A DNA stretch of 64,000 nucleotides from Asterias rubens (Eukaryota), in the NCBI RefSeq assembly GCF_902459465.1, contig NC_047079.1, positions 6,572,001 through 6,636,000 on the forward strand, given 5' to 3'. Below are positions 484-63,638 of this stretch, in pieces; within the stretch, counting starts at the first letter, position 1; each line of letters begins with the position of its first letter. The notes below the pieces were generated by a model. The model saw nothing but the letters and a program-made list of their open reading frames with translations. It made no database searches and was not told the DNA's origin. Both the position numbers and the translations under genes were made by a program.

Positions 484-509
484 GAATAACCATAGAGAAA
501 GGGAATAAC
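484..509. mobile_element. Micro-insert CATAGAGAAAGG between 7-bp duplications GAATAAC (putative P-like excision scar)
   Basis: Direct reading: GAATAAC 484-490, insert 491-502, GAATAAC 503-509. Confidence 0.55.
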
Positions 510-1544
510 CAAGTCTCCACTACGTAATACGGAAAATATCAATCCCATCTCAACCCCGAAATCAAGTTATTTTTCTACGAGTTTTAAAAAGTCCCCTTCG
601 GTGCACCTTTCCCCAATATACTCGGATTTTTTTTTCAAAATCACGCCCCCTCAAAATGTGGACGGTATCGCAATTCGTCGTTATCATCTAACACTAGTCT
701 TTGCATTTCCCCCAATCTACTGATTTATTTAGACGTCGTTTATGAGCTGTTTGCTGATGATATTTAAGGGGGCCTTTATCGCAGGACCAAACCATGGGAA
801 AGGCAAACAAAACTGCGATTTTTGTGGGAGCTTACCTGTGCTTGGGCTTGTCTTATCTTGATAACACTCCAGGTACCCAGGTTCCCATTTTTTGTTGTAC
901 CTGTTGTAATAAATTCATGTCCAGGTTTAACGCGTGTCATAACACACAATAGAACTATTAATAAATCTCAATCAAGAAGTCAACATGACCACAGATTTTC
1001 AGATTTGGTGAAAATATCGAACGGGGGTAAAACAAGTTTCAACTTCGGCAAAATAATTCACATGTAGATGGAACGAACGTATTATGGAATAAGTTTTTTT
1101 AGTAACTTTTAAAAAGGAATGTATTGTAACCAGTAATGAAACGAAGGTTTTTAAAACTTTCGAGAAAGGGCAGGTAATATAGCATGGAGAAAGGGCTCAT
1201 ATAAATACAGATTCTTTTGCAAAGAGTTTATTATTTTATTTATTTTAGAGAACATCACGGTAATCTGTACCTCTCTGCTCAGGTTCATGTGTAGAGCAAG
1301 GAAGTCAAGTGCGTTGCCAAACTCATGTCTCAATTGTTACTGATTTCGTCAGCAGAACAAAAGGTTAAACAAAACATCATGCCATTTACTCAAAAATAAT
1401 TGTAAACATTTTTATAGTTTAGATTCGAAATTTCCTTTCCCACTAGTTGTTTTATTTGTTCCGTTTAGTCATTAAGACCCAGGGGGTATAGTAAAGAAAA
1501 AGAAATGTATAACAACAAAAATGAAGCGGCTTGGTCGATATTAA

Positions 1545-1906
1545 AGCCATTTGACGCTTTCGGTAAAAAAAAACAAAAAGTTCACAGATTTACAAATAAC
1601 TTACAGGATTTACAGAAGGTAATGGTGAAAGACTTCTTTTGAAATATTATTCCATGAAATGCTTTACTTTTTGAGAAACAGTAAAACAATATCAATTCTC
1701 GATATCGACAATTACGGATTTATTTTAAACACACGTCATGACACGGCGAAACGTGCGGAAACAAGGGTGGGTTTCCCGTTATTTTCTTCCGACTCCGATG
1801 ACCGATTGGGCCTAAATTTTGACAGGTTTGTTGTTTTATATATAAGTTGTGATACACGAAGTGTGGGCCTTTGGACAATACTTTTTACCGAAAGTGTCCA
1901 ATGGCT
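1545..1906 (-). mobile_element. TTAA-flanked MITE (Kolobok/T2-like), family AGCCATTGGAC
   Basis: TTAA at 1541-1544 and 1907-1910; TIR AGCCATT(T/G)GAC.CTTTCGGTA; inverted homologue at 13700-14062. Confidence 0.85.
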
Positions 1907-2619
1907 TTAATTAAGAAGAATTTGTCGTTAATTTTTTTTTTTTTTTTTTTAAGGAATAAACTTTCAGATTCTTTTAAGAGTCGAATTCACCCGGTTTTCT
2001 TTGACTGAGTAGTTGACGGACATCATTTTATTAAACAACGTCAATAAACACTCTGAATAAACAAACTATTCCGTGTTGGTTAATAACCACCACAAAAAAA
2101 GAACCGACAATTCTAAAAAGAAAAACGAAAAGATCTCCAAAAATATTAGTCAAATAAATGTCCATAAATAAATAAACGCCAACGTGGAAAAAAAAGAGAA
2201 CAAAAATACAAAACGCCAAAAATGAAACCACCACTGATTAAATAAACTGGCACTGTGTGGTGAAAAAACACCTGTTCAGGTTTTTTTTTTGACTATCGGA
2301 ATTTTCCCACGGTCGAAAACCGAAGCGCCAGCAAGCACTCATGAGTCAAAAGTCCTTCCACTTGCCTTTGGCACGTGCCCGTCACCGAGCGCTTCCTGCG
2401 GGCCCCCATTTCTGGTCCCAGGTTGGTTCCTGATAACGATCTAAAAGTGCTGAGCTGTTTCGAAGTTTTGTCCACCACGTACCCAGAAAAGAAAACCACT
2501 AGACTTTTTGACATGAATGTTTTAAGTTATAGAGTTTTCTTGATTGTGTGAATGGTATCGTCTTGTTTGAAATTCTTTTCTTGAGACGATGTGGCGATGG
2601 TGTTTTTTTTGTCAGTTTG

Positions 2620-2828
2620 TGTAATGTCTTGCGTTTCTACAAAATTATCTCATAAACCAATAAGTGACTTTAGAATTATGCAACATAATGTAATGTCTTG
2701 CGTTTCTACAAAATTATCTCATAAACCAACAAGTGACTTTAGAATTATGCAACATAATGTAATGTCTTGCGTTTCTACAAAATTATCTCATAAACCAATA
2801 AGTAACTTTAGAATTATGCAACATAATT
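2620..2828. repeat. Tandem repeat, 69-bp unit x3
   Basis: GTAATGTCTTGCGTTTCTACAAAATTATCTC... starts at 2621, 2690, 2759; near-identical units. Confidence 0.95.
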
Positions 2829-3483
2829 CTTAACCAAACATCTTCATAAGTGTTGATTCTATGTTGTAAGTTTTTCGTTAGTTTGTATCGTAGATACCTA
2901 TTTTACATATTGGCCTAATTCCATAAAGCCTGTAAGCACAACAACTTGCTTTAGTTTGTGCTTAGCCTATGGCCTTACAGTCACCATTGCTGCCACTGCT
3001 TCCCCAGTAGAAAAAAAATTCACCCTGGATAAGCTGCTAAGTTCTGCTTAGCAGCTCTATGAAAGTGGCCCCTGTGCTTCTTTTGAATCGCTGTCTTTTT
3101 GCATTGAAGTTTGCTTTCTAAACGGTATCTCTCTGCACTGCGTGCAGTCAGTGTGTTTTGTGTGCCACCGCTAGGGTAAAATAAATAGTGCATTATCGTC
3201 ACGAGGTGGCGCTCTAGCAGTTTCGAGGGTACAGACGTTTGATTGTACAATGAACACAATACTAGTGAGTGCATACTATTAACAGAACCTGACTATAGTG
3301 CTTGTGTAAAGTACTGTCGTCTCCTAGGTTTTCTGTGCTGTTTTAAATTTGATTTTTCAGGGACAAGGACTAAATATTAGCCTTGGTATCTATCATTTTC
3401 AGAATCAGCACCCCCAAACTAGGTAAACCTTTACTCAAAAATAACGCCCACTCCCTTAAATAGAGCCCTTAGTTGAAATTTGG

Positions 3484-3520
3484 GTTAGACCATAGAGCAA
3501 GGAACAGGTTATGGTTAGAC
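3484..3520. mobile_element. Micro-insert CATAGAGCAAGGAACAGGTTATG between 7-bp duplications GTTAGAC
   Basis: GTTAGAC 3484-3490, 23-bp insert with CATA...TATG ends, GTTAGAC 3514-3520. Confidence 0.65.
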
Positions 3521-4253
3521 GAATCACTGCACACTCAAACACAGTGTTGAAAATTCTTTTCTTTTTTGAAGTATTGTATCAGATTATAATAAATTGTGTC
3601 AATGCACTTCGTTATGAAACGAATGTCGCTGAGGTTTTCGATTTCCCCACTGGCTGGCAGACCATTTTGATTAATTTGAAAATCTGATTTTGCACTTCCG
3701 TTGAAGAATGTAGGCCCGTAGGTGAAATGGGACGGTTGCAGATTATATTATGCATCATTCAAGGACTGTTTAAATTGTTCATATTATAGGAGTAATACAA
3801 TAATCAGAAAATTGTAAAGTAACTTGTAAATGTCTAGAGAAATAAGTAGTTGAAGCTAACTTGCCGGTTCTACTTATAATATAAGTAGAAGTTGTTTTTA
3901 TGCAAAGCTGAATTTCGACAATAACAGCAGCTAAATCGGAATTTAAATGTTTCCTCTCCAATCTTTGTATCTTTGTCATTTTTAAACCGATGTCTATCTA
4001 CAGACAAGGCAAGAAGGGGTGTCTGCAGAGTCATGTGCGCACTATTTGTGCCTGCTAAAACTTCTGATGCAAAATTGTCTCTTTTGTGAACCCAAAGAAT
4101 TTGCGTTTATGTGGTTACACATTCAAACCGGGGACGTTCAATGGCTGTTTAAAACACTTAGCAGAAATACGTGTAATTATTACAGAGATGTGTGCTTCTT
4201 CTGTACTTCACACTTCTTTTTAATAAAAAAGTGTATGAAAAGGGGGCATTTAA

Positions 4254-4622
4254 AGGCAGTGGACACTATTGGTAGCAATTGTCAAAGACTACATATCTCA
4301 ACATATGCATAAAATAACTAACATGTGGAAATTTGAGCTCAATCGGTCATCGAAGTTGCGAGATATTAATGAATGAGAAAAACAACTCTTGTCACACGAA
4401 GTTGCGTGCGTGTAGATGGTTGATTTCGAGACCTCAAGTTCTAAATATGAGGTCTCGAAATCAAGTTCGTGGAAAAATACTTCTTTCTGAAAAACTATGG
4501 CACTTCAGAGGGAGCCGTTTCTCACAATGTTTTATACCATCAGCCTCTCCCCATTACTCGTCACCAAGAAAGGTTTTATGCTAATAATTATTTTGAGTAA
4601 TTTACCAATAGTGCCCACTGCA
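4254..4622 (+). mobile_element. TTAA-flanked MITE (Kolobok/T2-like), family AGGCAGTGGACAC
   Basis: TTAA|AGGCAGTGGACACTATTGGT TIR; internal 17-bp hairpin TTGATTTCGAGACCTCA/TGAGGTCTCGAAATCAA; six near-full copies in the window. Confidence 0.88.
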
Positions 4623-5409
4623 TTAAAAAGTACAATGCTCGGTGCAGAGCCTGTGGAATACACATGCCCTTGTGATATCTTTTGTCATGGTTGGTTAAAG
4701 GCACATACAGTACGTCGAAACACTGCCCTAAAGCAAGAAGCCCCAGTGGCGTTTTTTCTAAATAAGAAAACGATTGATGGTCCTGTGGGGATTGTTAGAT
4801 TCACTGATGCGAAAATTCTTTCCCTTTTTTTTTTTTTTTAGCCAACTGATCGATTGCAATTTTCGTAAATTACTTACGCCGTAAAAAAAATACCTGAGGC
4901 GCGGCTTTTATGATGGCACTTAACAACAAAACATAAAAACACAACGCTGGTGAAAGTGTAGTCATCGGAAACAGGAAATTCACTTTAATGTCTGAAATTT
5001 CGGAAATTCCGACGTTGTAAAACCGCTCAAAGCGTGACATTTATGACAATTTCTGAATACAGTTTTTTGATTTTGAAGTTGGCGAAATTGTACTCGTCGA
5101 AACGGAAACATTTTTGTCAAACAAAATCCCTACTCGACCCTCTGGGATTTCAGCAATTATTATCGGTGTAAAAATGCCCGGAGCATGAAATTTATGAAAA
5201 AAGGAGTGGAAACAGCTCATAAAGTGTCCGCACGCCGTAGGCAATTCTTCAATATTTTTGAAGAGATAATAGGCGCACCTATTAACTTAATGATCGTTTA
5301 AAAACCTATAGGAGGTTTGTATATTTTTATGGGGAAACTGTGCTTGGAATAAAAATTATGGACGTGTTTTTGTGGAACGTAAAGGCAAAGCACACTTTTT
5401 GGTTATTGT

Positions 5410-5580
5410 AGAAGACTTTCTCTTTCTCCAGAAGACGATCAGAGCATACTGATCGAAACGTCGAGTTGAAACCAACGGTTCTTTTCAGAACCACCCCAAC
5501 TCATTAGAGATAGTCATTACGTGGTGTTACCGCAAACCTTTCCATATCGTATTTCCACCATGCAAAGTTTCAAATCCTAG
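5410..5580 (+). mobile_element. Penelope-like element terminal fragment with hammerhead-like core (reverse homologue about 52865-52990)
   Basis: CAGAAGA-C-GATCAG/CTGATC-GAAACGTC motif plus a shared downstream body (GAGTTG.AACCAACGGTTCTTTTC.GAACC) in two copies. Confidence 0.55.
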
Positions 5581-6708: not shown

Positions 6709-6731
6709 GTTGGTTTACTATGGTGAAGTGT

Positions 6732-6843
6732 GGCCGTGTCCGAAACGACGACTTCGGCTACAGCTACGGCTAGATCAGCGCGTCTGCCAGTATTGAAGAG
6801 TATTGAAGCCTCTGTAGCCGTAATCACCGTTTCGGACACGGCC
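6732..6843. mobile_element. Palindromic Harbinger/Tourist-like MITE, family GGCCGTGTCCGAA
   Basis: TIR GGCCGTGTCCGAAACG/CGTTTCGGACACGGCC; homologues at 12808, 15164, 30241. Confidence 0.75.
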
Positions 6844-6847
6844 TTAA

Positions 6848-11169: not shown

Positions 11170-11565
11170 AGAAACTGGACACTATTGGTAATTATCAAAG
11201 ACTAGTCTTCACAGTTGGTGTATCTCAACATATTTATACAAAATCAAACCTGTGCAAATTTGAGTTAAATCGGTCGTCGAAGTTGCGAGATATTAATGAC
11301 AGAAAAAACACCCTTGTCGCACCATGGTCGCACGAAGTTGTGTGATTTCAGATGCTTGATTTCGAGACCTCAAATTCTAAATCTAAGGTCTCGAAATCAA
11401 ACTCATGGACAATTAATTATCGAAAACTACGTCAGTTCATCTCCAGTTCAGAGGGAGCTGTTTCTCACAATGTTTTATACCATCAACCTCTCCCCATTAC
11501 TCGTAATCAAGAGAGGTTTTATGATAATAATGATTGTGAGTAATTACCAATAGTGTCTACTTCCT
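11170..11565 (+). mobile_element. TTAA-flanked MITE, family AGGCAGTGGACAC
   Basis: TTAA at 11166-11169 and 11566-11569, TIRs, homologous body. Confidence 0.87.
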
Positions 11566-12543: not shown

Positions 12544-12784
12544 GGCCCAATTTCATAGAGCTGCTAAGCACACAAATTTGCTAAGCATGAAATGTCTTCC
12601 TTGGTAAAAACAGGATTACCAACAAAATTTCAATTTGTTGTATATTCCTCGTTACTGGTATTCAGCTGTTGTTTGCTCATCCTGAAAATCACGTTAACAT
12701 TTGGTTGGTAATCCTGTTTTCATCAAGGAAGAAACTTCATGCTAAGCAAATTGTTGTGCTTAGCAGCTCTATGAAATTGGGCCC
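12544..12784. mobile_element. MITE family GGCCCAATTTCATAGAGCTGCTAAGCA
   Basis: TIRs of about 28 bp; second full copy 60200-60439; fragments near 3025-3072 and 60622-60680. Confidence 0.82.
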
Positions 12785-12939: not shown

Positions 12940-13316
12940 TTACTTAATTACTTCCTTACTCTATCACATCATTACCAAAGCTTGGTACCGTACGGCATTA
13001 TTTCCTTGTTGAGATTACAGAGTACCAAAACTACTATTCATTACACCACTGATTGTTCATACTAGATTCATTTACATTGATACCTAAGAGTTGATGACCC
13101 TACCAAAGCTATGTCGCCACCTTGCTCACATTGTCTTGTTTCCCTATAAAATTTATAACTTTTTCATGCACGAATAGATTATATTTAAATAATAATATGT
13201 CCTTGCTCTACGATCACATGATACCATGATGATACCAAAGCTACTAAAGTTGATAGTAATTCAGCACTGATTGCTCACACTGCCTCGTTTCACTATAACA
13301 TATTCAGCATACTTAA

Positions 13317-15303: not shown

Positions 15304-17539
15304 TTAGTTTAGAGAGGTTATGGATTTACATGCTTTTTACATAGCTCTATGGTTTTACCACATCATCGGACGTTGTGCTGTAATTGTCATTAACTATACC
15401 GTATAGTTCTTATGTAAGGACCAATGTGTAGTCAACCACAATATAGAAGTCAAGACGGTGCAGAGAATACCAAACACAAAGTTTGTTGTGATTTTCTTCC
15501 CGTGCGCTTTGTTTTGCATGAAACATCGGTGACTTCTGCCGTGATGATCTTTTATCTGTGGTACTATTAAGATGCATAAAGCAAGGGACGTACATGTAGG
15601 GCTTACGGTGTCCTATATGTTCAGGCCGTACTCTTATATTGGGCTGTGAGGGTATCACAATCCAAAATGCATACAAGCAAACAAGTTTTGGGCAACATTT
15701 TGCATTCTTGAAACCTAATATTAATAGTGAACACAAATCTACTTAACCGTTTGTATATCGGCCTTCATATCAAGAAAACGCAATGAAGTACACTCGGGGT
15801 TTAAATTCATGTTGATTTTTTTTGGTACTAACAACGAATTTGTAGAGGAACCTTGGGCATTGTTTCATCCACCCAGGTACAGGTACATCGGGGTCAGTTC
15901 CCCCGTGTCTCCGGGCTCAGTCACGCCGCTAGGTCCCTAACCCTTGGTACCCCTTTGGGAAGACTCACGAGACCTCGATTCTAGCCCTCTCAACAACTTT
16001 CTCTAAAGGTGAGTCATGTTTACAGGACCTCTGAAGTCCCCCCCCCCCACCCCCCCCCCCAAAAAAAAGGACAACCACTACACTTTCATCGTTTACATAA
16101 TTTCTGTTGTTTATTGAGACCACTTTGTTCGAACGACAATAGATCTATTTTTCTTATAAACACAATTTCAGCAGCTAGAGAAGGATAATAAATAACTCCA
16201 TCAGCGTAAGTCACCGGTGAGTGTTCCCCCTAGGTTGGCGAGAGGGTCACCCTGGATTCACATCAGAACGGTCGTGGGAAAATCTTGCGAGCCCTTGAAG
16301 CTGATTTTTAAAGGGACATTCCTTAACTTTTCAGCAAGCATTCTAATCGCAAAATATGTGGTTGTTTTGAGAGATTTATCACTGCTGTTTGCTTGTTTTA
16401 ATGTCGTCGCGCGCCCGTTTGAAGGCCGTGCAGCAAAAAGTTACCAAAAAGGACCTGTTATAATAATAATAAGCAATGTGCGGAATTGTGTTTCGAGAAA
16501 ACTGAGTGTGAAAGTGTGATTGGTTTTCTGCCAATCATAAGTTATAATTGGCAAGGTTAAATTCTGCATGGGAATGGAAAACATGTATTTTGGGGGTAAT
16601 TATAGCGAAACAAAAATGTAACGATTATGCCATATTTGTTTTGTCATCAAGTGTCATTTTATTGCATGTACTTCGTGTGCCTGAAAGAAGAGCGTAGAGC
16701 CATATGCACTGTTTCTGGCACAGGCAAGCGATATAATGTGTCTTGATATTCAAGAAACACACATCTTAATTGTTCCAAAAACACACTGTGGATAACAATG
16801 CTCGAGATAGTTTAGTGAATTGGCGCGTAAGGCCAAGAAACCTTTTTTCTCTGGGAAAACAAGTTCTACACCCTTGGATTCGTCCTATCCTACTCCAGAA
16901 TATCTTCTACAGTTCGGCTAATTTTGTCTATACAAAAACAAACTACCTAGAAAGAAACAGTCAGTCACCTGTAAGATTAGCTTTTGATTGGTCCCCCATT
17001 CAAACTTAGGAGGGGTGGGGCATAAGTGTTCCTTGAAATTTGACTTATACTTAAAAAACAAATTTCGTAGGTCTTAGTTTAGTCACGTGCATCCGCACAC
17101 AACTAATGTATTGTGAATGTGTGCTGGGGGAATGGCGGGAATTAAGACTCGCAAACTGACCTTGACAACAAACCGTTTTTGTACTTCGTCTGGGAACATT
17201 TTACTTAGTCGATGTGAAAAACCTGCAGAGATTACACAATTAATTAAGGAATCAGGAAGTGTTTGTCTGAATATAGCGTGGGAATTAAACGAACTCGTTT
17301 TCTGGTCGTTCCCCTGGGTGTTAACACATGGCGAGCATTTTGATGATATAACAATATGGCATTAAAGGGTGTAGTGTTAACATGTAGAGATTATACTTGG
17401 ACAGCCATCATTTCAGAGTGTAGCTAATTTATTTACGATGGTGGCATCATGGAGGAAGTTGGAGGAAGTTGGAGGGAGGAGGTCACACAATCATCCATGG
17501 TTTATTGAATGAAACTTGACCGCTGACCAGACTTTAGAC

Positions 17540-18960: not shown

Positions 18961-21900
18961 ACATTGCTGCCCTGTGAAGAAAACAAGACTAAAACACAGG
19001 TGGTTCATTTCTCCAAGCCATTATTCCCCCACAACCCTGAAACACTTTTACCCAAAATCAATTCACTTTAATTGTAAACAGTAGACCCACAGTCCGATCG
19101 CTTTAATGGCCGTAGTTTATAATCGTAATGGGTTCGCCACTTCTCACGACTTGTATTCCCAGCGCCGAAATCTGAAGCGATCCGAAGTGATCGGTTTTCG
19201 AGTTCTCAGTAGCCTGATCTCGGAGATCCGATATGGTTGACATAATTAAATATCGCACGGTAACTTTATACCGAGTTGACGGTCGTTTGCGGTGAAACAG
19301 ATTATTCATTTTCAGGACCTCTTGCCAAAAAGAACTTTAGAGCATCTCATAAGGTGATTGCGTTACATGGTTTTCAAAGAAAGCCCTTGTGTCATATTAA
19401 GGTATTTCTTAAGGTAGTCGTTGGAAATGCCAACGAAAAGAACAGATGGTAATTCGCGAAAGTCAGAAGCGCAGGTTTTTTTGTTTACAAATTAAGCCTA
19501 CAAGACGCCAGCCGCACTTGAACTTGATGCTAATCGCCATCCAGTTTGATCATAATTTAAATTTGCTTGCAGACCTGGTTCGAAACCTGGCAGATTTAAC
19601 CAATGTCCCATGTATAGTTGGGCAGACAGAAGGAATATTTGTTAATAAAGTATTGTGCCTTTGGTAAGTGGAGTATGGAATTAGGCACCCAGTCTGACTT
19701 GGAGTATGTCATGAGACTGTGGGAGGAGAGTAATATTCTGGGGGGGACCCCACGCAGTCAGGATATGGACTGGAAACACCAGTGCTCGGTGTGATTCGAA
19801 GTCCTGGAAGTGGAAAGCGAGGAAAAACCTCTACACCAACCCGACCACCCGTTCCCCATGTCAGCGTCGTGCTGTGTGCTCTTTGGAGTGGTCGAAAGTC
19901 ACATGCAATATTCCTTAGGACTTAGTGCAACCATGGAGGAAGAAAATAGAGTGCAACCATGGAGGGTGCAACGGCGCAGAACTAATGAGAGAAGGCGTTG
20001 ATTTCTAAATGAATAGTTGATAGAAACAAACAATGAGATTCCCAAGGAGCTTTCATTCCATTCGTAATTTGACAATACGCTCAACAAAATGTTGCACCAT
20101 GCATTGATTGCACATGGTGTAAAGATGGTCATGGTGGGAATATCTTTATAAAGCTACCACCTTTTGATTGAAATTAATTCAACTACATTTATATAGGGTT
20201 AAAATAATCGGTTCCAACATTCCAAAGGTATAGCCATTAATTTTTTTTTTCTCACGGACGATATTTTCTCACGCTGCGGTCCGCGTTCTCACGTTTCAGA
20301 CGGTAGGATGCTGGGGCCGAAACCGCACACTTCAAGGTGTGAACACATAAGCCAATCAACCGTCACCTGTGTTGTTTTCTCGGCCCTCTCTTCTCCCCCC
20401 CCCCCCCCCCCCACTCCTTCTCTCTCACCGGTAATGGAAGCGTCGCGTCATCCCCGAGGATAAGAGTAAACAAACCCTGCTGACTTCTTGGTACTATCAT
20501 GGAGCAATGGTAGAGTTTAGTTTGCAATAGGTACATCTTCCCGTCACCTGTGATTTTTGTCATGGATTTCTCTTCAGTGACCAGTTCTTCATTTCTTGAG
20601 GTGTAGGAGTAAAGAGGGAGGGGGAAGATGATGTATGGAGTCAGAAAAAGTGAATGCTTTACCAAAAATAGAGCCTCATCCGAAAATACTGAAAATGTGT
20701 CAACTTTATATATGCTAATGAAAGACATGGACCTTCCAACCACCTTACTCATTGTGTGTGTGTGGGGGGGGGGGGCTTATCTCTGACAAAATTGAGGGCT
20801 GGGTACGTGGGGTAGAACTTCTTAAATAATTTAGGCAAACTGGTTTCTCATACAATTGTAAAAGCATACGTCTATGTAAGTCAGTATATCAAAGTTTGTA
20901 AACTACCGAGAGATTGGGCATTGTCATAGAGCTATAACTCTATGGGCATTGTTCAAACTTGTTCCACAAAATAATTCAAAGTAATTCCTAAAACAGTTTC
21001 AAACAACTTGTGGTTTCTGAATATATCCGTCACTCGCGATCTGATTTCCCGTGCATCACTCGTGAAAATTACAGTTCATAACTGATCAGTGGTCAAACGA
21101 GTAACAAAATAACGAGGTCAAATCATAGAGTGGCACCTTTTGAGGATTAGAGGGGGAGAGTGAGAGGCCGTGGGGACCCACTTTGGTGACCCTCGCGTAC
21201 GCAGTGTGCGCCCCGCAAGAAGCACGACCCACCCCGCAAGGAACCCGTGCCAGTACGCTCTACACACGTACACCAAGCCACAAGCCTGGGGGCAGGCAGA
21301 CAGAGAGAGGGCCACAAGAAAGGCTGTGCTATTTTACCTGTTTACAGCAGCGCAACAATTTGTTTTAATTGATACCAGGTTTCCAGACCCTCACTACCCC
21401 CGGAGTAAGATGTTCCCACGCCCTCAGACCAACCTCTCCCCGACCGCCAGGTCCCTGAAATGTTTTTCTTTGCGGTTTTTCTTCTTTCCCCGATTAAAAA
21501 ACCGACTCGGGTTTTCAGACAGTTCTCAGACATAACACGAAAGCTTTGATTCGATTTTATTATCAACGGTCGAGGAGCCATCAATCATTCAGAGACTGAC
21601 GTCAATTTTTCTCTCTCAAAATAAACTCTGGGTTAAAAAGAAAACTCTGCAAGAAGTTTTTTTTCTGACATATTGAGTGATGGTGTCGATTTGGGTTTGC
21701 TTTTATTCCATTTTGGTACTCGTAGAGTGATTCCAATACGCTTGGCATGAAATCTTCTCCCCTTTTTAACCTTGGACTTTTTAGTATGTCTAACGAGTAT
21801 AGTTAGGAAATATTGACAAAATAAAGGACTGTTGTACTCTCTAGAACAAACCCGATTTTGAAATCGATTTTCGCGTACGTGATTTCTCTTTCACGACGAA

Positions 21901-22569
21901 CGCTTTGTATGTGACCATGATGTGACCAACCCCAAGGCTTTAGATGTAACTTTATTGTCGTAGGATATCTCTATCCACTTATTCAAATTAAGCTAGTTTT
22001 CCTCATGTAACCATACTTGTTTGTCTAGTTCAATGTCTACCTCGTCGTTTGTCTCTTTGGCCGTCTGTCTTGTCCTAAGTCTGATTTCTAAGTTTCGTCA
22101 ACCCTTGCTTAACCAGCCTCCGTACTCCTCTTTCTACTGTAATATGTTTACTCTGACTTAATTAATAACTTACTACTTTATTTTTGATTCGTAACATTTT
22201 TTTTTCTCACAAGAAATTATGGACATTAGTGTTTTCTGGAATTGAATTTAAGACGTGTCCGACCATAAAACGTCATGTTTTTTTTTAATCCGTTCATGGA
22301 AAACGTAATCAACCGCAATGTTTGTGATGTAGTCTAGACAACTCAAACCACCTTGCTGAACCGTGGGAAATAAAATAACTTTACGTGTTGGCAATCGAAA
22401 CAGAAAGGGGGTTCGGTTCCGGTTCATGCCTGAATAATGTATAGGCGTAATCCTCTTATCCGTCAAGTGCTTGGCACTGCAGCTTTGCGAAAAACCCCAT
22501 TAACGGAAGATGACGTAGTCGCCATTTTGTGGTTTCCATCTTGTGCAACTACCCTAAGAAAAACTATAC

Positions 22570-23319: not shown

Positions 23320-23609
23320 ATTCTTTATCCCCGATGCAAATTTAACATCTCTTATATCGTTGCGGTACCCGCTGTCAAAACATAGGATTCGAACTGCCTC
23401 TAGCTACACGGCAACCTCGGTAGTCTAGTTGGTAAGACACTGCTCTAGAATTGCCAGGGTCGTGGGTTCGAATCCCACCCGAGTAATATGCCTGTGATAC
23501 TTTGTTCACGGACTCGGGAAAGTACTGAGTAATACAGTGCTAACACACATCGGTGTATGGGTAAAAACCAAAATCAATATTCTTTATCCCCGATGCAAAC
23601 TTAACATCT
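23320..23609 (+). mobile_element. tRNA-derived SINE-like unit between two 31-bp direct repeats
   Basis: tRNA-like head 23415-23484 (A box TAGTCTAGTTGG, D stem GTCT/AGAC, T arm GTGGG-TTCGAAT-CCCAC); ATTCTTTATCCCCGATGCAAAYTTAACATCT at 23320-23350 and 23579-23609. Confidence 0.7.
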
Positions 23610-26080: not shown

Positions 26081-26104
26081 GTCAAACCATAGAGGAAGTC
26101 AAAC
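26081..26104. mobile_element. Micro-insert CATAGAGGAA between 7-bp duplications GTCAAAC
   Basis: GTCAAAC 26081-26087, insert 26088-26097, GTCAAAC 26098-26104. Confidence 0.55.
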
Positions 26105-27355: not shown

Positions 27356-27392
27356 GTTGTCCCATAGAGTAAGGACAGAGATATGGTTGTCC
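27356..27392. mobile_element. Micro-insert CATAGAGTAAGGACAGAGATATG between 7-bp duplications GTTGTCC
   Basis: GTTGTCC 27356-27362, 23-bp insert similar to the one at 3491, GTTGTCC 27386-27392. Confidence 0.65.
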
Positions 27393-29640: not shown

Positions 29641-29674
29641 GTCAAAGCATGGAGGAGGAAAATAATGGTCAAAG
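29641..29674. mobile_element. Micro-insert CATGGAGGAGGAAAATAATG between 7-bp duplications GTCAAAG
   Basis: GTCAAAG 29641-29647, insert 29648-29667, GTCAAAG 29668-29674. Confidence 0.62.
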
Positions 29675-33796: not shown

Positions 33797-33837
33797 CTAT
33801 CACCATGGAGGAATAATTTATTCCTCCATGCTATCAC
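33797..33837. mobile_element. 27-bp perfect hairpin CATGGAGGAATAA-T-TTATTCCTCCATG between 7-bp duplications CTATCAC
   Basis: 13-bp perfect inverted arms 33804-33830; CTATCAC at 33797-33803 and 33831-33837. Confidence 0.75.
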
Positions 33838-38125: not shown

Positions 38126-39216
38126 CTACCATGGTCTCCACATAGGGTCATCGTCCCCTGACACTTCATAATTTGGATACACCCCCGCCAGTCGAATGGG
38201 ACGTCCTATCTGCTCTCGCGGTTTCTCGTGAGAGGCTAGTCTTGCTGGCGAGATTTCGGCATTAAATGGAAAAGAAATGGCGAGGGGTGGGGCTAGGATA
38301 GAGGGGGCGACAGCTCCAGGTCGTGGCGATATGAGCTGCGCAGCTGGTATAGGAATGGCAGTCCAGGCAACTTGTTGGCCATCTATTGCCGAAGATGGCG
38401 CTCCTGACGTCATTCTTGGGCTTGCCGTGGACGCAGGTGAGGGGCTGACGTCACAGGAGCGTTCTGCTGTTGCAGTTGCAGCAGGACTTGGCTTTTGGAA
38501 AGTGACAACACCGGGGAGGGAGGTGATAGCGTTTGCTTGTGGGGCGTAGACGGGGATTAGATGGGTAGGTACCTGGCCGCCAGGTAGCGACTGGCTAGGC
38601 AGGATTAGCGTGATCATCTCGTTGAACTTGGGCGGTTGTTGAGACGCCTTCGTCGGTAGGTTTTGAGCGACGATTACAGACTGCGTGTTTGCCCCTTTGG
38701 CGACCGGTGTGTCTGATTGGGATGAAGGAGTTGCGGGGAGTTTTTGGTCCTGCGTGATGGGTGCCTGACGGGGTGTGAACCCAGTCCTCGCCCCCTCCAC
38801 TTTGGGTGATGTGAGGAATGTTGAAACAGGTTGCCGCCCCACGACGGGTACTTTATGGGTTCTGCTCGGGGGTGGTGTGAGGAAGTTAGCATACGGTGAC
38901 TGGGCGGAGCTGACTTGGATTGGCGGACTGGGGCGAACCGTGGCTTCCAATCCATGTGAGGTCACCGGTGTAGGGGATAGCTGCACGTGATTGGTTCCTT
39001 GAGTCTGTGAATGGGAACCACCGGCAAATTTGATTGGTTGCTGTCCACGTTGCTGTTGTTGGGTGGTGCACAGCCCGGCGAGGTGGCCCAAGAGGCGGGC
39101 ACGTACCTCCGGGTTCTCGTCCATCGCCCCGCCGAGATAACGCGAGACTTCACCCATGCACTCTGCGAATCCCGTTCGGTACTTTGTGAGAACTGCTGGA
39201 TCGACATCTACGGAAG
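38126..39216 (-). CDS. Hes: Hes/hairy exon 4: Orange domain, long P/S/T/A-rich region, C-terminal WRPW
   Basis: ORF 38126-39247 contains the Orange domain (KYRTGFAECMGEVSRYL...RLLGHL) and ends MWRPW-stop (Groucho/TLE-binding motif). Acceptor tttatAG before 39216; phase fits exon 3. Confidence 0.97.
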
Positions 39217-40434
39217 CTATAAATAAATAAAATACGAAAAGAAACACATTTGATGAATCGATCGTTCACACAACCATCAATTGGACCCATTTATTGCCAG
39301 CTAATTTGAAATTGAATATTGATTTTAAACGCCGGAACCCAGAGTGTTGCTTCATCAAATTTAGATTAAGCTCATTGTATTGAAGCGATTCCCTTTTTGG
39401 CACTAGGGGGATAACAGTAAAACACCTGTCATCTTTGTGCACTCCAATTAACTTTTGGTGCTTAGTTCTTCTTCTTTTTGTTTGTGCCACTTTAGATGTT
39501 TTGGGATCTGGATCAATTTTATCTCCTGTTTTCTATTTCATGTTGTGTTGTATACGCTCCAATTTCTACTTGTTTTTTTTTTAGTTAACAATATTTGACC
39601 TGGTTTTATTCTCTCTGGGTTTTTTTGTGTTTTTTTTCCTTCCCCTAATTCGGCTCTTGGCCACGATGCAAAAGGTATATTTTTGTTGCTAGAATAAACG
39701 AACGAGGTAAAATGCTTCTTCTTTGTATAGCAAGAATAATCAATCAATTGAAATATACCGTGGGAACTTATTGAATTGCTTTGCTAAACTAAAAACTCGC
39801 GTTGGTCCAACATTTTGACTTAATATGGTTTCACTTTCATTTGGAGTCCGTGTTTACTGCTGCAGTTGCTACTGACAAAGGGCGTTGTTTTTGGCTTCTA
39901 TTCTCTCTCAATTGTCGTAGTTTCAACATGCTCACTCTCGAGGAGTTTTTGTGTTTGTTTATATCCTTCTTCAGCAGACAATGCTTGGAGCACTTTAAAA
40001 GCTGGAATTCTCAAGGCCTGCTCAGTTGAAGGTGTTCTGAGTGGTTTTTCACATTCGCAGTCACACCTCAGGTAAATTTAGATAAGCCTACTGTTTTTGT
40101 TTTGTGTCGACAGGCACGAATGCTTATTTATAGAGGCCCCTTTCGAACCTTGGGGCTCAGGCTTTTTATGGCAGGTTCAAAACAGACAGACAGAGCCTAA
40201 GTCGGAGGCCATTGTGAGTCGTTGTTTCGAAAACGGACACAGATTTATATCGCACGTCATCATATTCGTCGTGTTCCCTGACTGCAGTCAATTCAGAAAC
40301 ACTGATTCCCATTAGATATCATCGGAGTACTGTCTGTTTTATACATTATGCCTCGGTTTGGTTCAATTGATGTGAATGGGGAGAAAACAAGATGGCCATA
40401 CCATAATAGGGAACAAACGGATAATCCAACTTAC

Positions 40435-40522
40435 TTTTGACTTGTTGGCGCTGAACGTTTCTTAAGTATCGGACTGTCATTTCCAAGATGTCAGCTTTCT
40501 CCAGCTTGGAATGGCGGGGATT
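40435..40522 (-). CDS. Hes: Hes/hairy exon 3: loop and helix 2 ([29 protein letters not shown])
   Basis: [12 protein letters not shown] motif; tttacAG acceptor, GTAAGT donor; 88 nt ending in phase 1 as in Hes1. Confidence 0.96.
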
Positions 40523-41929
40523 CTGTAAAAAAAAAACACAAAAAAAAACCATAATATTTCATCAAATTGGGGATACAACTTTGATTTCAGTTTCCATATT
40601 TCCATCCTCAACACTTAAAATTTATAACGGTAAAAAGAACATGTAGGTATAAGGAAATTATCATAAGAAGTGCAGCTTAGGTTTAATGTTAAAGAAAAAA
40701 CATGCACAAATTTTCATTTACAAGGTTGCTTGAAAAAAATACACAAGTTGATTGTTCTGGGGTTTCAGAAAGAGTGGTAGAAGGGCCTTGATAATGTATT
40801 ATTATATTTTTCAAAGTAAATATTTGCTGGCTTTTTAGAACTTAGAAGTCTCAATTGTGGGTAAATTAAATTAATCGTCAAAAGAATGGTTCCAAGATAA
40901 AGCGAAAGCTTTTGGACAAATTAAAAACTGGATTGTAAAAAAATCCAGAATTTCATTGATTTGTTTATCTGAGACAAAATCATCAACTGTAAAGTTTTTA
41001 GGTGGTTTGGTTTGAAAAGGTCGATAATCTGCCGCTTAGAAAACAACCCCAGTGTCATTGCACAATCTATAAACGGGGAACTTTGGTACAGTCAGCGCAT
41101 GACAACTTTACAGAAGTGACGTGTCAACAACACCCCTCATGAATAATTCATGCTATTTGAACAGCCTGATGAATTATGCATGCAGCGTCGCGTTGTCATC
41201 ATGACCGTAAATAAAAATGATATCATCAAAAAGTTGCAAATCGGGCAGGTCTGCTCACGCCTGTTGTGTTTATTTACATAAACCCAGCTTAATGGCAGTA
41301 GGGATAATATAATCTACGCTCGCGACGAAAAGGTACAATAAAAAGGGAGAAGGAAATGAAATTAAGACGACAAAAGAATTATCAGATACTTGCGTAAGTC
41401 TCGCCAAAAGGAAATAATAATATGCGACATTGTATTTCCTTGTTTTCGTTGAATAACACTGAAGTGAGTGCCTTTATAGATGACATTTTAAAGTTTAGAT
41501 AAAGTTCTGGGTATAGAATTGGTGGTGAGAATTTACTTCTCCTCACTAAAAATCACATTTTTTGTTCATGAAATACGTATTGTAAAGACGTGAAAACAGC
41601 TTTGCTAACAAGGAGCGCTGAGTACTCAGTTTATGTTTAATTCTTTTTAACTTTTCAATTTCAACTCTTCGTATAAATTTGACTAATTCAGCCCTTAGCT
41701 GTGATGGTCTTTTTGTTTTTCAACAAAACATATCAAATCAAATCAAAGTTCTCCCTTGACTTTGTTAGATGTGTTTGAAGCAAGGACTCCGTTAACCCTT
41801 GATGTTTGGCGTTGGGCCAGTACAGTCATGTTTATTATTTTTAGAGTCCAAAGGTTTATTGTAATGGTATAAAGTCACACGTGGCATTGGATGAACTGAA
41901 TAATACATACATATATAAATGGGTTATTT

Positions 41930-42265
41930 ACCCAATGAGGGTGTTTTTATGTGCTTTTACAAATCTCATGGCTTCTGAAATCGTGAATTAGATATAAAAC
42001 TGGTGCCACAGACAAAATTAATAGTAACTTGAGTCAACTTTTATTCCACACAATGATGGTGCTTTTACATGCACTTCCAACAAATCTCAAATTTAACCTG
42101 AAATCTTTGATAGTGGAGTCGAGATAAATTTGTCATACAGACAAAAAAGTCAAGTGTTTCACCCTGTATTCAGCCAATGATGGTCGTTTTTACCTGTTTC
42201 CACAAATCCCACGGTTTTATCTAACTTTATTGCAGTGGAGATAAAATTGTTGTCACACAGACCAA
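41930..42265. repeat. Diverged tandem repeat (about 118-bp unit x3) in Hes intron 2
   Basis: Recurrent CAATGA(G/T)GGT...TTTTA...ACAAATC...GAGATAAA...CACAGAC(A/C)AA blocks. Confidence 0.6.
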
Positions 42266-42444
42266 CATTGTGTTTTAGTGACGTGATATATATTGGGTGA
42301 CTGCTCTGTCTTCTGACAACCCCATGTTCCGAAAAGGAAGTATTGGGGTTAGGGTTAGGGTACCAGTAAGGATTAGGAAATTTTAGGGGAACATTGGTGT
42401 GGAACCAACTTAGAATTGTTATATTTCTTGTATTTTAAACCTAC

Positions 42445-42540
42445 GTTTTTGTTCAGTCCATCAAGAACCAGCGACTTGAGTTGTAGTAGACTTTCATTTA
42501 TCCTAGCTCTTCGTCTCTTCTCCATAGCCGGCTTAGAGGC
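42445..42540 (-). CDS. Hes: Hes/hairy exon 2: basic region and helix 1 ([32 protein letters not shown])
   Basis: Unmistakable Hes bHLH motif; tttttgacAG acceptor and GTAGGT donor; 96 nt, the canonical Hes1-type exon 2 length. Not in the ORF track. Confidence 0.96.
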
Positions 42541-43311
42541 CTGTCAAAAATGTAAACAAGAAAACAACTTTTTAGTGGTTCATTTTTTTGTAGATCTCCA
42601 CTTCGACTGACATAGTAAATATTATGTTGTAAAGATGACATAGACTTTATGTGGTTAAACTGTAATGGATTCTCAAACAATAATTACAAAGAGCTTAAAG
42701 AGTTCATGGCTATATGAAAATATCACTTTAAAGCAACAACATTTCTTATTGATTGGATCATTGCAGAATGTATGTCTTTATTTCGACTGAAATGGTTAGA
42801 TCAAGATGGTAGATGACAATATAACAGGTCCCATTTTCTTGAAGATTACTTTTATGAGTCCACTGATATCTTAGGCTATACTTAAAAACTAACATCTTAA
42901 AGAGTTTGAAACGCAAATATCATTAGTTGTCAAGCGACAACAGTTTCTCTGAGACTGTCACCGTCTTAATTATGTAAAATAAGAAGCCCTCTTGAAACTG
43001 ATTCGAATCAAAACACAAGACCTTTAAGACCACCTACTTCTGGTTAAATCTCAGCCACATGACCCTTGACAATGTTGTAACAAAACTTACATATAAGTTG
43101 ATGATTCGATATATACAATCTAATCTCTTCAAGATATCGAAGATGGTCAAAGCATCGCATCAGATCCTCACGACCCAGACCCACGCCCCCTTTTTGTTTA
43201 CACCGACCGAGACAGTATTCTTTCCAAAAAATAATTCCAATCAACCATCCAATTAAATTACAATTATTTAATTATCTTAATTAACAATCTTCATTAATTA
43301 GATTTAATCAC

Positions 43312-43347
43312 CTTCATTGTTTGTTTCTCCGTTGGTGCGCTAGTCAT
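43312..43347 (-). CDS. Hes: Hes/hairy bHLH-O repressor, probable coding exon 1 (MTSAPTEKQTMK)
   Basis: ATG at 43347, 12 codons ending AAG|GTGATT donor in phase 0, matching the usual K|xSKP junction of Hes exon 1/2. I found no better K-ending donor between here and exon 2. Confidence 0.65.
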
Positions 43348-45268: not shown

Positions 45269-45418
45269 NNNNNNNNNNNNNNNNNNNNNNNNNNNNNNNN
45301 NNNNNNNNNNNNNNNNNNNNNNNNNNNNNNNNNNNNNNNNNNNNNNNNNNNNNNNNNNNNNNNNNNNNNNNNNNNNNNNNNNNNNNNNNNNNNNNNNNNN
45401 NNNNNNNNNNNNNNNNNN
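45269..45418. other. Assembly gap (150 N)
   Basis: Run of N; true length unknown; lies between the Hes promoter and the candidate upstream enhancer. Confidence 0.99.
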
Positions 45419-58620: not shown

Positions 58621-58985
58621 AATGCTCAGACTCTTAGCTCAGGCTAAATCTGCTCGAAAAAGTCACTCATACCATGGAGGAAGATGGAGGCTTCCTCCAT
58701 GCTCATACCAACACATGGCAAACAAACAAAGATCAAAGACATCATGCAGGCATGATACTTCACGGAGGCAACGAAGGCGATTGCCTCCATGCACCATAGC
58801 CATTGCCTTGATGCCTTTACCAAGACGGTAATGCTAACACTCTTAGCTCAGGCTAAGTCTGCTCGAAAAAACACTCATACCAACACATAGCAAACAAACT
58901 AAGATCAAAGACATCATGCTGGCATGATACTTCACTTGCCTCCATGCCCCATAGTCAATGCCTTGATGCCCTTTACCAAGGAGCA
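58621..58985. repeat. Local diverged duplication (58621-58829 vs 58830-58985)
   Basis: AATGCT.A.ACTCTTAGCTCAGGCTAA.TCTGCTCGAAAAA...AAGATCAAAGACATCATGC.GGCATGATACTTCAC present twice. Confidence 0.85.
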
Positions 58986-60199
58986 AATTCCTTGGTTCCA
59001 TTGCCCTTTCAAGTCGAAGTATACGGTACAAGAATAGCAAGACGGTGAAGAGAATGGAAATTACACTAGGAGGGCTTCATCAAACAATGGAGGAACACTG
59101 CCTGATGAGGAGGTTAATCTGGGTTCAGTTTGGCTGAATGTTAAAAACAACAAGACCGAATTCTGGCTTGCTCCACCGTCCATTGGCGTTTTCCAAACCT
59201 CGGCTTAAAGGCTCCAGCTCCGCGTTTGATTTTGGAAACACTGTACAAAATGTGTACTGCTTTCCAACATAGACGAGTCACGGAGCCCAGAGCTGGAAAC
59301 GGAGCCAAAGCCCTGGTTTGGAAAGGGCCCCCAATCGTCACTAAACACCACACATTTCCTTCAGGGAATAATTTCGTCCTTGCAAAATTAAAATCCACCT
59401 TTACGAATAAGCTACGAACCACCTCTTTCTTTCTGTTAAAAAAAAGAGGAGTGCATTTATCCAACCTCAGACATGGTTTACTTCTAATCACTTCGGTATT
59501 GTACTTGTTCAGGTATTTTTGGCAGTACATTTGGCAGAAGATCATGCCTAAGTAACCATAGTTTAATCGAAAAATTCTGTAGCTTTTTCTTCTCCTTGAT
59601 TGTGTTTTAGGGTTCTTTTCAAGTCATGATCTCCCGGTCTCCAAGGAAGGAGGGGTCAAGACACATCTCATGCGTCACCAATTGCCCCCTAAAGAAGGAT
59701 AATCCTGAATTCAGCTCAGTTTAATCTCGGGCTCTTTTACGGTTATTTTGGCAAAATTAAAAGCAAAATTAAGTAAATGTCGCCCCACCGATGGGGTATC
59801 GCCTTTTATTGATTTCTGGCTTTATACGAACTAACTTCATCGGATACTCGCTACCATCAGATACTCGCTACCATCTCTATAAGAAGTAGGTTTTTTTTTT
59901 GTTTTTTTTTTTGGGGGGGGAGGAATTACCCTACCTTTAAACAAAATACTTTCGTTGGCAATCTCCTATTTTCCAACTTGGCTAGTGATAACTGAATTGC
60001 CCAAGATTATTACTGTTATCTATCTCCTGGGTACATTTTGTGTACCGGCAATGTCCTGTTTATTATCTCATCTTGAATATTGGTGTTAGTTTTTAACTTT
60101 TGATACCGCCATTTTGTTTATAGTACTTGCCGCTGTACTCTACTCCATAATCCTGACCCATTGCGGATCAAGAATCTGTGTCAAAATGCCATGTCACCA

Positions 60200-60439
60200 G
60201 GGCCCAATTTCATAGAGCTACTAAGCATAACAATTTGCTTAGCATGAAATTTCTTCCTTGATAAAAACAAGATTACCAACCAAATTTTAAATTGTTGCAT
60301 AATGCTTATTACTGGCATTCAGCTGTTGTTTGCTTATCCTGCAAATCACGTGGAAATTTGGTTGGTAACCTGTTTTTATCAATGAAGAAGATTCATGCTA
60401 AGCAAATTTTGGTGCTTAGCAGCTCTATAAAATTGGGCC
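60200..60439. mobile_element. MITE family GGCCCAATTTCATAGAGCTGCTAAGCA
   Basis: TIRs and body homologous (inverted) to 12544-12784. Confidence 0.82.
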
Positions 60440-63092
60440 ATGTACAGTTTGTTACTGGTATCCTGCAAATTTTCGCTAAACACAAAAATTGTAAGCAAAA
60501 CCTATTAAATCAGGCCATGTTCTTTTACGCGGTCCCAAAGAGCTGATGTATATAGTGAAGAGCACTTCAAGAAAACTATACAAGGTTTTTGAAGAATGGT
60601 GTGAAATTGCCCTTTCAGTTGTGCCCAGTTTCATAGAACTCATTAAACAAACAGTTTTGCTTAACAAATTCTTGCTGAGCAGAAATAGACAGGTCACCAG
60701 TCAGAAATGGTACATGTGACATGGTATATTGGCTGGTAACCTTAACTCGGGTAAGCAGCTCCGTGAAGTTGGGTCCATGTGATAATCAATCCGTGTGGTA
60801 TATTGACTCGCACAGTAATTTTTATCCTGCTCTTTTGACTCGTGCATCTTCTAAAAAGGAGTACACTGAGGCACTGAGGGAAAAGTGGGGAACAAAAACA
60901 GGAGCCATGAAAAAAATTTGGTAAAACCAAGGTTTAGGAGATTACGCTTCGGAGACACCGGGGTTTTCTCCTTTCAGATTGCATTGCCATCCAATCAGAC
61001 TTAACGGTCACAAAGCCGGAAAGACACCGCAAAGTGAATTGGCCGTGATTTGGGCACAATAGACGGCACGATAATGAAGGCGAGAGAGCCCAAGCTCTAC
61101 GTGTTCCAGAAGTTACAGGAATTTAGCCAAGGGACATCACAAGTTGGAAAACGGGGTTTAGTGGTCTTAGGATGAAAAGGGTTACAATTGCCAGGGGTTT
61201 TAGCCGTAGACGTTAAGGATTAAGAACTGTTCATTCCCCTTTCCTCATTTTCACAGAATGCAGTTCGTGTGACTTGCGTGAAAGCTGGTGTTAGATTAGA
61301 AGGGAAAACTCCACGGCGTCGAAGATGTAATTTATCCGATCACGTGTTGGTGGCAGGTTCGCCCCAGGCCTAAAAAATATCCCAAGGTATTTGCTTGTAA
61401 CAGTTAGGGCCTACTCCTTATTAACACTGGATAAATATGTTCGTTTTAAACCAGGAAGAAATAATTATGTTTGTATTAAGTTTTCTTAGAATGATGGAGA
61501 AATCGAGCAGCTTTTATCAATATTCATAAAGTTATTATTCATTTGTTGGCAATTTTCTTTTTAAAATATATTGAACCAAGAGATCTTGGGCCTATAACAA
61601 CACAAAACAATTGAGTAACTCTTTGGCATGACATTATAGATATAAAAAGCAGAGAAGAAATGTGAAGAATTGTAGTAGATTTGGAAGAAAAAACCTACAA
61701 AAAGGGAAACCCGAGTTACCAAGTTGGGACTATAAACCAAATCCACTATAGTACGTGTGATTTTGCTGAAAGACGGGGTTTTGGGGTCCAATGTGGCGAA
61801 CCGTAGAAAAACTGATCCCCTTGAAAACGCTGTGACATTTTATTTTTAGTAAAGGTCTGAAATATGTGGTTTTGTCGACAACCCCTTTGTCGAAACTGTT
61901 GAGATTTCGGGCAAACTATAAACGAGTAGTGTTTTTCCTTGTGGTAAGCGCATTTATCTCACCGGTAGGCAGCATCTATTCTTCCCCCTTCATGGGGCCT
62001 CCTGGTTGACGAGCAGTCGCGTGACCGTCAACAAAATATAGACCCTTCCGCCTCGCCTCATCCCTCGGCAGATCGGCAGTTTACAAATCATCGAAGAAAA
62101 CAAAAGTCAACAATGACCACAACAACCAAATCTTTTTCAGGATTGCAGGGGGGAAGTTTCTTTCATTCGGAGGCTAATCTTGACCTAATCTGGCCTTCTT
62201 GATGGCAAATGAAATCCGATTATCTAGCTGGGATTAGTCAATCAAGTCGGCTGCTGGGGAAAATCGTGAAAGGGGGGTTGCGCAAGAAAAATAAGGAAGC
62301 TTGCTTACATAATTAAGCAGCAGTATGTTTTACTGTTATTCCATTTTGTACAAACTTGCAGTGAAGACAACTGTTATAATCTGTTATGCGATTTTATTAA
62401 AATAGCTTGTAGATCACTGTGTAATATTTTTATTGCACGTTTTCTTCTAAAGGCCTCAATTTACAATCCAAATTTAATTAGTAATCCACTCGTTAAATAA
62501 TATAGACATTTAAAAAATATATATAATTTACAATATTGTTTTGTTAAAATATCCGTTCCTATACTTGATAGGACAGTCGTCGATTTTAATTCAGTTAGAA
62601 AAGAAGGGCATTTTAGATTTGATTGATTGTGTTCCAAAGTCCAAAGTTTGACCAGTCCTTTGCAGTTTTTGTACACCTTGTCTTTAGTAATTTATTACAT
62701 GAAGTTATTTTGCAAAAAGACCTACTCAAATATTATTTCCCCTCTGTCGAAATAACATAAATCGTGTTCTGCTCTTTTTCCGTTTATTTTTTTGCAAATG
62801 AAAGAACTTTGTAACTTCACATGCAGCGCACTCTGCACCAACCACTTTACCAAAACGAGATTATGTGTGTTGATGCTACCACTGGGGGCGGCAAACATAA
62901 TCCACGGACACCATTTTTTTGAGAAGATCCTCAGAGAGGGCGCTATTTACTAATATTGGAGCGGGTAGTAAATAATTATGTAATGCTATTTTCTTCCTCC
63001 GTGGTGTTACGGTGATTTTGTAACAAGGGGCGCACTTATGTTTTTCTGCTATCAGTCGAGTGGGGGCGCCCTTGACACTTACAGTACTCCAA

Positions 63093-63242
63093 CTAATGTG
63101 TGTATGGGTTACTCTTTCCCACGATAGACCACTGCATGAGAACGGCGTCTGCTCCGCCTGTAGAGATCAGAAAGCTGTCATTCACAAGGAACCGTGCGCC
63201 GGTGACGTGAAAGCTTTGGGCCTTGATGTCAAAGGACGTTGC
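63093..63242 (-). CDS. EML/EMAP-family WD40 protein, terminal exon (ATSFDIKAQSFHVTGARFLVNDSFLISTGGADAVLMQWSIVGKSNPYTH*)
   Basis: Resembles the EML terminal repeat pattern HVT.V.F...DS.LISTGG.D.S.MQW; tcttccAG acceptor, in frame with the preceding exon; TAG stop; AATAAA on the minus strand at 62783-62788. Confidence 0.88.
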   Translation of the reverse strand, partial: ATSFDIKAQSFHVTGARFLVNDSFLISTGGADAVLMQWSIVGKSNPYTH

Positions 63243-63638
63243 CTGGAAGACCGAAAAGAAAGACGGTAAGGTCAATGTGCATTGGCACAACTTTATACAT
63301 TAGCTGATGCAGTACCACTCCAAGCCATGTCCGTGCATCCATGATTCTGCGTGGATGGCGCAGTTACGCCCTCTATCGTCCTATAATAATCCTCCCGTCA
63401 TTTGTGCCCTCAAAGTCGGTATTGAGACCCTGTCTATATAGAAACCCTCCATTGGATAGAGGCAAAACCCTCTCACGGACTTTAATAAGTTTGGTTTACC
63501 TGTTTCAGTTATAAGAAATTGTTCTTTGGATATGCAGTGTGAGTATCCTAGATACTTTTATTCATTTAAAATGAACTGCAGATTTCACTGTTTGCTTCTA
63601 AGGCAGAGCATCAGAGCCCCAGAATTTGAAATACTCAC

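Follow-up and report, generated by a model that had tools for sequence, protein, structure and literature searches.

Short repeat-flanked inserts in Asterias rubens as probable excision footprints of P-superfamily-like DNA transposons

A 64,000-nt stretch of the genome of the sea star Asterias rubens (NCBI RefSeq assembly GCF_902459465.1, contig NC_047079.1, positions 6,572,001 to 6,636,000 of the forward strand; hereafter the window) contains a family of very short inserts, each enclosed by two copies of a short direct repeat and built from two kinds of tip, CATGGAGG... and CATAGAG..., matched by complementary sequences at the opposite end. We conclude that these inserts are very probably footprints left at donor sites by the excision of cut-and-paste DNA transposons resembling those of the P superfamily. 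The main new result is a ceiling of 17 nt on the tip sequence retained at either side, which matches the staggered cut of P transposase followed by end joining. With this enzyme, the cut in the non-transferred strand falls 17 nt into the inverted repeat, an unusually long and distinctive stagger (PMC7776569).

All long remnants end at exactly 17 nt of tip, in combinations such as 17+2, 17+3, 17+8, 17+10 and 17+17. The tip CATGGAGGAAGAAAATA was found at 19932, at 29648 and 62987 (with one change each), and in four further contigs (L031, L049, L117 and L108, described below). What follows its last letter varies from site to site: GA and then the repeat at 19932, ATG and then the repeat at 29648, GC at 62987, CA and an 8-nt opposite tip in L031, an 8-nt opposite tip at once (starting with CC) in L049, five filler letters (starting with AA) and a 17-nt opposite tip in L117, and CA in L108. 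The second tip, CATGGAGGAATAATTTA, is continued by 10 nt of opposite tip at 33797 and by GATG in the A. amurensis locus L125. The longest inserts are a 34-nt one of exactly 17+17 at the A. rubens CREG1 site (L126) and one of 17+5+17 with filler (L117), while those at 3484 and 27356 are readable as 17+2+4. Shorter outcomes comprise 11+7+11 (with a filler copied from the tip), 10+10, 13+13, 12, 10 and 8 nt, and CATG alone. Commonly one tail is intact and the other trimmed, many inserts have only one tip, and no two inserts at different sites are identical. The initial annotation had proposed that 17-nt overhangs would leave short remnants of the inverted repeats between the target duplications, and the remnants indeed stay within 17 nt on each side. 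The variation of the junctions from site to site, together with the filler copied from the tip at 58666, is what independent repair events would be expected to produce.

The family stands out clearly from chance. Exact matches to the pattern of a 7-mer, CAT[AG]GAG with up to 30 further nucleotides, and the same 7-mer again number 10 in the window, compared with a mean of 0.01 and a maximum of 1 in 300 dinucleotide-preserving shuffles of it, an excess of about 1000-fold; comparison with shuffled sequence had been proposed as a check by the initial annotation. The nine main CAT(A/G)GAG loci that it listed all read as described there. The minimal form, CATG between two identical 7-mers, occurs three times (11316, 13218 and 21909) against an expectation of 0.017; the latter two had been put forward as weaker cases and are supported, and the first is an addition. 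A further weak case, at 63442..63472, was rejected as a family member: it lacks the family tip, and its 8-bp repeat is of chance level. An unbiased scan for short palindromes between direct repeats of 5-10 bp recovered this family only, together with the centre of one hairpin miniature inverted-repeat transposable element (MITE). Allowing one mismatch in the repeat added the minus-strand site at 15334-15358, and a search with the 17-nt tip added the decayed minus-strand site at 62987-63010. The sites are unevenly spread: the first 28 kb of the window hold 11, against one or two per 25 kb elsewhere. The earlier estimate of one site per 7 kb holds locally but not in general, as other Asterias loci carry about one per 12-25 kb.

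The flanking repeats share a target motif. Across the window, its A. amurensis orthologue L001, the CREG1 loci L125 and L126 and contig L031, there are 16 perfect duplications of 7 bp and one of 8 bp. Fourteen perfect duplications give the consensus GTNNNAC (G in 10, T in 12, and A and C in 13 each; p from 5e-5 to 9e-9 per position), and six of them carry the full motif, against 0.05 expected. The symmetric pattern S-T-N-N-N-A-S described in the initial annotation is thus visible, although the sharper form GTNNNAC is the one that fits. A palindromic target of this kind is known from the P superfamily: the element 1360 duplicates 7 bp with the motif GTTNAAC, and P itself prefers GTCCGGAC (Linheiro and Bergman, PMC3276498). 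Beyond the second repeat, the flank opens with CA (often CAA) at 9 of 17 footprint sites from the same loci (p = 3e-7), and a mirrored TG is present upstream at 3 of 17. Reading the CA as part of a 9-bp duplication was rejected, since it fails at 8 of the 17 sites. At two positions, 18616 (+) of the Asterias locus L127 and 2366 (+) of L108, the right repeat is reduced to its last four letters (CAAC and AGAC, respectively); a type of repair that removes 3 nt of flank may have occurred repeatedly.

Comparisons with orthologous and paralogous sites provided direct controls. The A. amurensis orthologue is 95.8% identical to the window over 26 kb and has a clean empty site, a single CTATCAC, at the position of the 33797 insert. 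Conversely, A. amurensis has a 13+13 nt insert of its own where A. rubens is empty (35237/8), the left flank there being slightly altered too. At the CREG1 locus pair, the 34-nt A. rubens insert lies between two copies of GTTGGAT, and A. amurensis has a single copy, GTTTGAA, which differs by two letters. Within the window, a tandem duplication of about 210 bp (58630-58960; copies about 82% alike) serves as an internal filled/empty control, as the segment adjacent to the 58666 insert has a single CTCATAC at 58874..58880. Similarly, four paralogous repeat copies in the window continue straight over a single-copy empty site corresponding to 11316. These single-repeat empty sites establish the scars as real insertions with target duplications; in this check, which the initial annotation had suggested, a duplication without an insert was never seen.

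The inserts are of different ages: one is shared with A. amurensis, three are species-specific and one seems to be polymorphic. The shared insert is the one at 29641; its counterpart at the orthologous site of A. amurensis differs by substitutions and lacks 2 nt. In about 50 kb compared, two scars are specific to A. rubens and one to A. amurensis. The interval around 19925 has its full form in runs X1 and X3, but in contigs of X4 (near-identical to the reference) and of X8 (about 5% diverged) it is shorter by exactly 26 nt. Twenty-six nucleotides equal one unit of repeat plus 19 nt (the comparison gives the length of the gap but not its position within the interval); this unit therefore seems to be young and polymorphic, and two successive hits on one target are probable. 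A joint of 20414 to 19930 was discounted, as it starts in a poly-C run. The candidate old footprint at 20498 differs by five changes within six letters, and the letters of run X8 rebuild CATTCCTCCATG, the mirror image of A. rubens CATGGAGCAATG bar one letter. This does not look like ordinary divergence and could reflect a very small inversion, or a shared element that was excised twice independently; with its poor flanking repeat, we give the site little weight. In the Hes loci of Acanthaster and Patiria (23 kb each) no such scars were detected, which weakly suggests that they are restricted to a lineage.

A simple series of events would account for these observations. An element with tips CATGGAGG... 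or CATAGAG... would enter a GTNNNAC target and duplicate its 7 bp, so that each site would once have housed a full element. On excision, the transposase would cleave the transferred strand exactly at the element's tip and its partner strand 17 nt further in, leaving each chromosomal flank with a 17-nt 3' tail of element sequence. End joining, of the theta type or the classical type, would then unite the tails, one usually remaining whole (17 nt) and the other being trimmed to 0-17 nt; occasionally some filler letters, or a short stretch copied from the tip, would be added. Where both tails pair at the self-complementary CATG (4 nt), the product would presumably be repeat-CATG-repeat.

Several observations weigh against this scheme. 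In about 190 kb of Asterias DNA (the window, L001, L125, L126 and L127), pairing each CAT[AG]GAG with every inverted partner at any distance and a relaxed scan over the Asterias loci revealed no longer element that combines these tips with a 7-bp duplication; up to several thousand copies in the genome are still compatible with a sample of this size. Thirteen hairpin MITEs inspected in the window did not include any with the scar tips. None of the sites compared pairs a scar in one genome with a full element in the other. Two contigs (L049 and L117) hold typical inserts without a recognisable duplication. One-sided remnants in the window number seven on the plus strand and two on the minus strand, and the CA and TG flanks are likewise unequal (about 0.07 by a hand-estimated Fisher's test), the latter either because the target motif is longer or because left and right truly differ; both imbalances are unexplained and not statistically firm. 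Finally, some 20 sites make a small sample.

The counts for the 190 kb (about 20 scars, no element) imply at least about six scars for every element. Such an excess would be expected if few elements hop repeatedly, leaving one scar at each end-joined donor site. These numbers, together with activity after the split of A. rubens and A. amurensis, are also compatible with a sea-star THAP9-like enzyme that is kept by the host and acts mainly as an excisase clearing elements, in which case the 17-nt scars would be a record of genome cleaning; we regard this as an unlikely, speculative extension.

The same product, a duplication with at most 17 nt per side, would also arise from abortive integration, in which broken-off or pre-cleaved tips are integrated and the target break is rejoined, or an element is integrated and removed within one cell cycle, so that a stable full-length insertion never exists. 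It would account for the lack of full elements in the 190 kb and for orthologous sites that hold a scar or nothing. At 20498, however, two lineages have mirror-image remnants, which suggests that an element lasted there and was excised twice. Moreover, abortive integration needs the same enzyme and elements in the genome, which makes it a variant rather than a true alternative, and quite an improbable one.

We infer membership of the P superfamily from geometry only. Four of six features of the superfamily were found, namely the duplication length, CA...TG tips, the 17-nt stagger and the GT...AC target. The initial annotation had interpreted the loci as P/THAP9-like excision footprints; as to the footprints, the excess over chance, the empty sites, the 17-nt limit and the target motif agree with it, and the P assignment keeps its geometric basis. 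P-superfamily elements also encode a transposase that combines a THAP (or other zinc) DNA-binding domain with an RNase-H-like core and a GTP-binding insertion. No transposase was identified: the ten longest open reading frames (ORFs) of the window outside the Hes gene have no Pfam match, and Pfam scans of the longest ORFs returned nothing relevant. A cut-and-paste family outside the P superfamily that shares the 7-bp duplication, the CA...TG tips and the 17-nt stagger by coincidence would also fit a membership read from geometry. We consider it decidedly improbable, since a 17-nt stagger is unusual and specific to P among characterised eukaryotic transposases (PMC7776569), the 7-bp duplication with GT...AC matches 1360, and the CATA/CATG tip matches the zebrafish element Pdre2. 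The other superfamilies considered fit poorly. Elements of the hAT superfamily make 8-bp duplications, have tips of the form YARNG and leave footprints derived from flank hairpins without element letters. A hAT origin was rejected here: the sea-star duplications measure 7 bp, T stands third in the tip, and element tips make up the footprints. Tc1/mariner (TA target) and Mutator (9-10 bp) origins were set aside because their defining features do not fit.

We also considered that palindromes of 20-34 bp might themselves be ultra-small mobile elements (micro-MITEs), copied or moved as units. They do have inverted tips and target duplications. A MITE family consists of many near-identical copies at different sites, whereas here the junctions all differ, lengths group as 17 + x instead of sharing one unit length, and many inserts are one-tipped or reduced to CATG and would be unrecognisable at both ends, so this origin appears very unlikely. 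Chance repeats or generic repair duplications with no link to a transposon can be dismissed almost entirely: short direct repeats are common (955 pairs of 7-mers within 40 bp in the window), but the shuffle controls refute this explanation, as do the shared tip and target motif and the fact that a second species and further sea-star contigs have these tips too.

The excision reading can be compared with several known systems. Footprints of Drosophila P likewise keep both duplications and retain tip remnants of at most 17 nt per side (PMC7776569), with variable junctions, possible filler and tips that start with CATG. The Drosophila duplication is 8 bp rather than 7 bp, and the tip sequences differ. 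Those footprints come from laboratory revertants, whereas the sea-star scars are natural, mostly fixed and known from scars alone. The elements 1360/Hoppel (and Galileo) share the 7-bp duplication and the palindromic GT...AC target (PMC3276498), but the middle of the sea-star target is unconstrained and the hosts are an insect and an echinoderm, respectively; we found no report of abundant 17-nt scars left by 1360. Among deuterostomes, the zebrafish P-type system Pdre2/THAP9 is similar in its tips, which start with CATA (CATACC in Pdre2, a P-like element) and end with TATG (PMC10983969). Pdre2 makes 8-bp duplications and is known from full and internally deleted copies, in contrast to the scars only of the sea star. 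In a rice census of DNA-transposon excisions (PMC4423477), sister genomes reveal insertions, excisions and footprints in a similar way; the plant superfamilies treated there leave footprints a few letters long, without the 17-nt signature. Our literature search retrieved such rice censuses and laboratory P footprints, and no description of echinoderm scars.

To our knowledge, the 17-nt staggered cut has been shown biochemically only for Drosophila P transposase. Natural sea-star scars would indicate the same geometry in a deuterostome P-like system, which bears on THAP9-type enzymes. The scars are long enough to be recognised and may offer a rare countable record of excisions and not of insertions alone, from which the hopping rates of a lineage could be estimated. 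They add inconspicuous insertions of 11-46 bp to regulatory DNA, and several lie upstream of coding regions. Being missed by repeat annotation, they could also serve as clean presence/absence markers in the population genetics of Asterias.

A scan of metagenome records for the 17-mer gave mostly chance matches, along with four sea-star-like contigs that carry scars and no clear full element. These contigs, L031, L049 and L108 (JACSEG01...) and L117 (JAAUXV01...), are filed as metagenome and look like sea-star transcripts with intronless ORFs. The encoded proteins include a Na/Ca exchanger and a CREG protein 72% identical to the CREG1-like protein of A. amurensis; the CATGGAGGAAGAAAATA tip is therefore probably present in another sea star too. 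L108 could represent either the end of an element or a scar whose repeat has been clipped. The scar lies upstream of the coding region in L031, L049 and L108, as it does at the A. rubens CREG1 site, a position that fits the promoter preference and local hopping described for P. All footprint sites of the window are listed in Table 1.

Table 1. Footprints and related sites in the window (positions counted from its first nucleotide)
Feature	Position	Strand	Description
Footprint	484..509	+	GAATAAC x2 flanking 12-nt left-tip remnant CATAGAGAAAGG
Footprint	3484..3520	+	GTTAGAC x2 flanking 23 nt, readable as 17-nt tip + GT + TATG
Minimal footprint	11316..11333	.	GTCGCAC-CATG-GTCGCAC
Minimal footprint	13218..13235	.	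ATGATAC-CATG-ATGATAC
Footprint	15334..15358	-	GTAAAAC-CATAGAGCTAT-GTAAAAA, repeat with one mismatch
Compound footprint	19925..19972	+	GTGCAAC x3; insert 1 is 17-nt tip CATGGAGGAAGAAAATA + GA, insert 2 is CATGGAGG
Candidate old footprint	20498..20509	+	Poor repeat; A. rubens CATGGAGCAATG, run X8 CATTCCTCCATG
Footprint	20917..20952	.	8-bp duplication GGCATTGT flanking 10+10 nt palindrome; present in runs X3 and X4
Minimal footprint	21909..21926	.	ATGTGAC-CATG-ATGTGAC; present in runs X3 and X4
Footprint	26081..26104	+	GTCAAAC x2 flanking 10-nt tip remnant; CATA continues in flank
Footprint	27356..27392	+	GTTGTCC x2 flanking 23 nt (17-nt tip + GA + TATG)
Older footprint	29641..29674	+	GTCAAAG x2 flanking 17-nt tip + ATG
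Young footprint	33797..33837	+	CTATCAC x2 flanking 27 nt (17-nt tip CATGGAGGAATAATTTA + 10-nt opposite tip)
Footprint	58666..58708	.	CTCATAC x2 flanking 11+7+11 nt; 7-nt filler ATGGAGG copies the tip
Empty paralogous site	58874..58880	.	One CTCATAC in adjacent tandem copy of the 58666 segment
Decayed footprint	62987..63010	-	GTAACAC + 17-nt tip with one change (CACGG...); right repeat not recognisable

The window has 40% G+C and is nearly devoid of coding sequence apart from a Hes/hairy-type bHLH-Orange gene at 38126-43347 (-), in which WRPW closes the last exon. This gene is 98% identical to its A. amurensis orthologue and is the sole gene called in 25 kb; a protein search with its bHLH region yielded no Asterias paralogues. 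Positions 28126-53347 are 100% identical to the A. rubens assembly GCA_902459465.3 (LR699109.1). An assembly gap of Ns at 45269-45418 is far from every scar site and touches none. A tRNA is located at 23414-23486. An Rfam match to the histone 3' stem-loop was found at 5472-5517 (+), with 35.7 bits against a threshold of 34; the ORF list of the whole window contains no histone ORF of at least 100 amino acids to accompany it.

Two conventional MITEs were also noted. One, of about 240 bp, starts with GGCCCAATTTCATAGAGC, has the ends GGCCCAATTTCATAGAGCTGCTAAGC and is present at 12544-12783 and 60198-60442, with a fragment near 3030-3070. It was set aside as a parent of the scars, since its CATAGAG is internal only, 10 nt from the MITE tip. 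The other is a hairpin MITE of about 195 bp at 9325-9519 of L126, present in A. rubens and absent in A. amurensis. Its immediate neighbour is the 17+17 scar, and CREG1 lies about 0.5 kb downstream, so that this promoter-proximal stretch has received two independent insertions.

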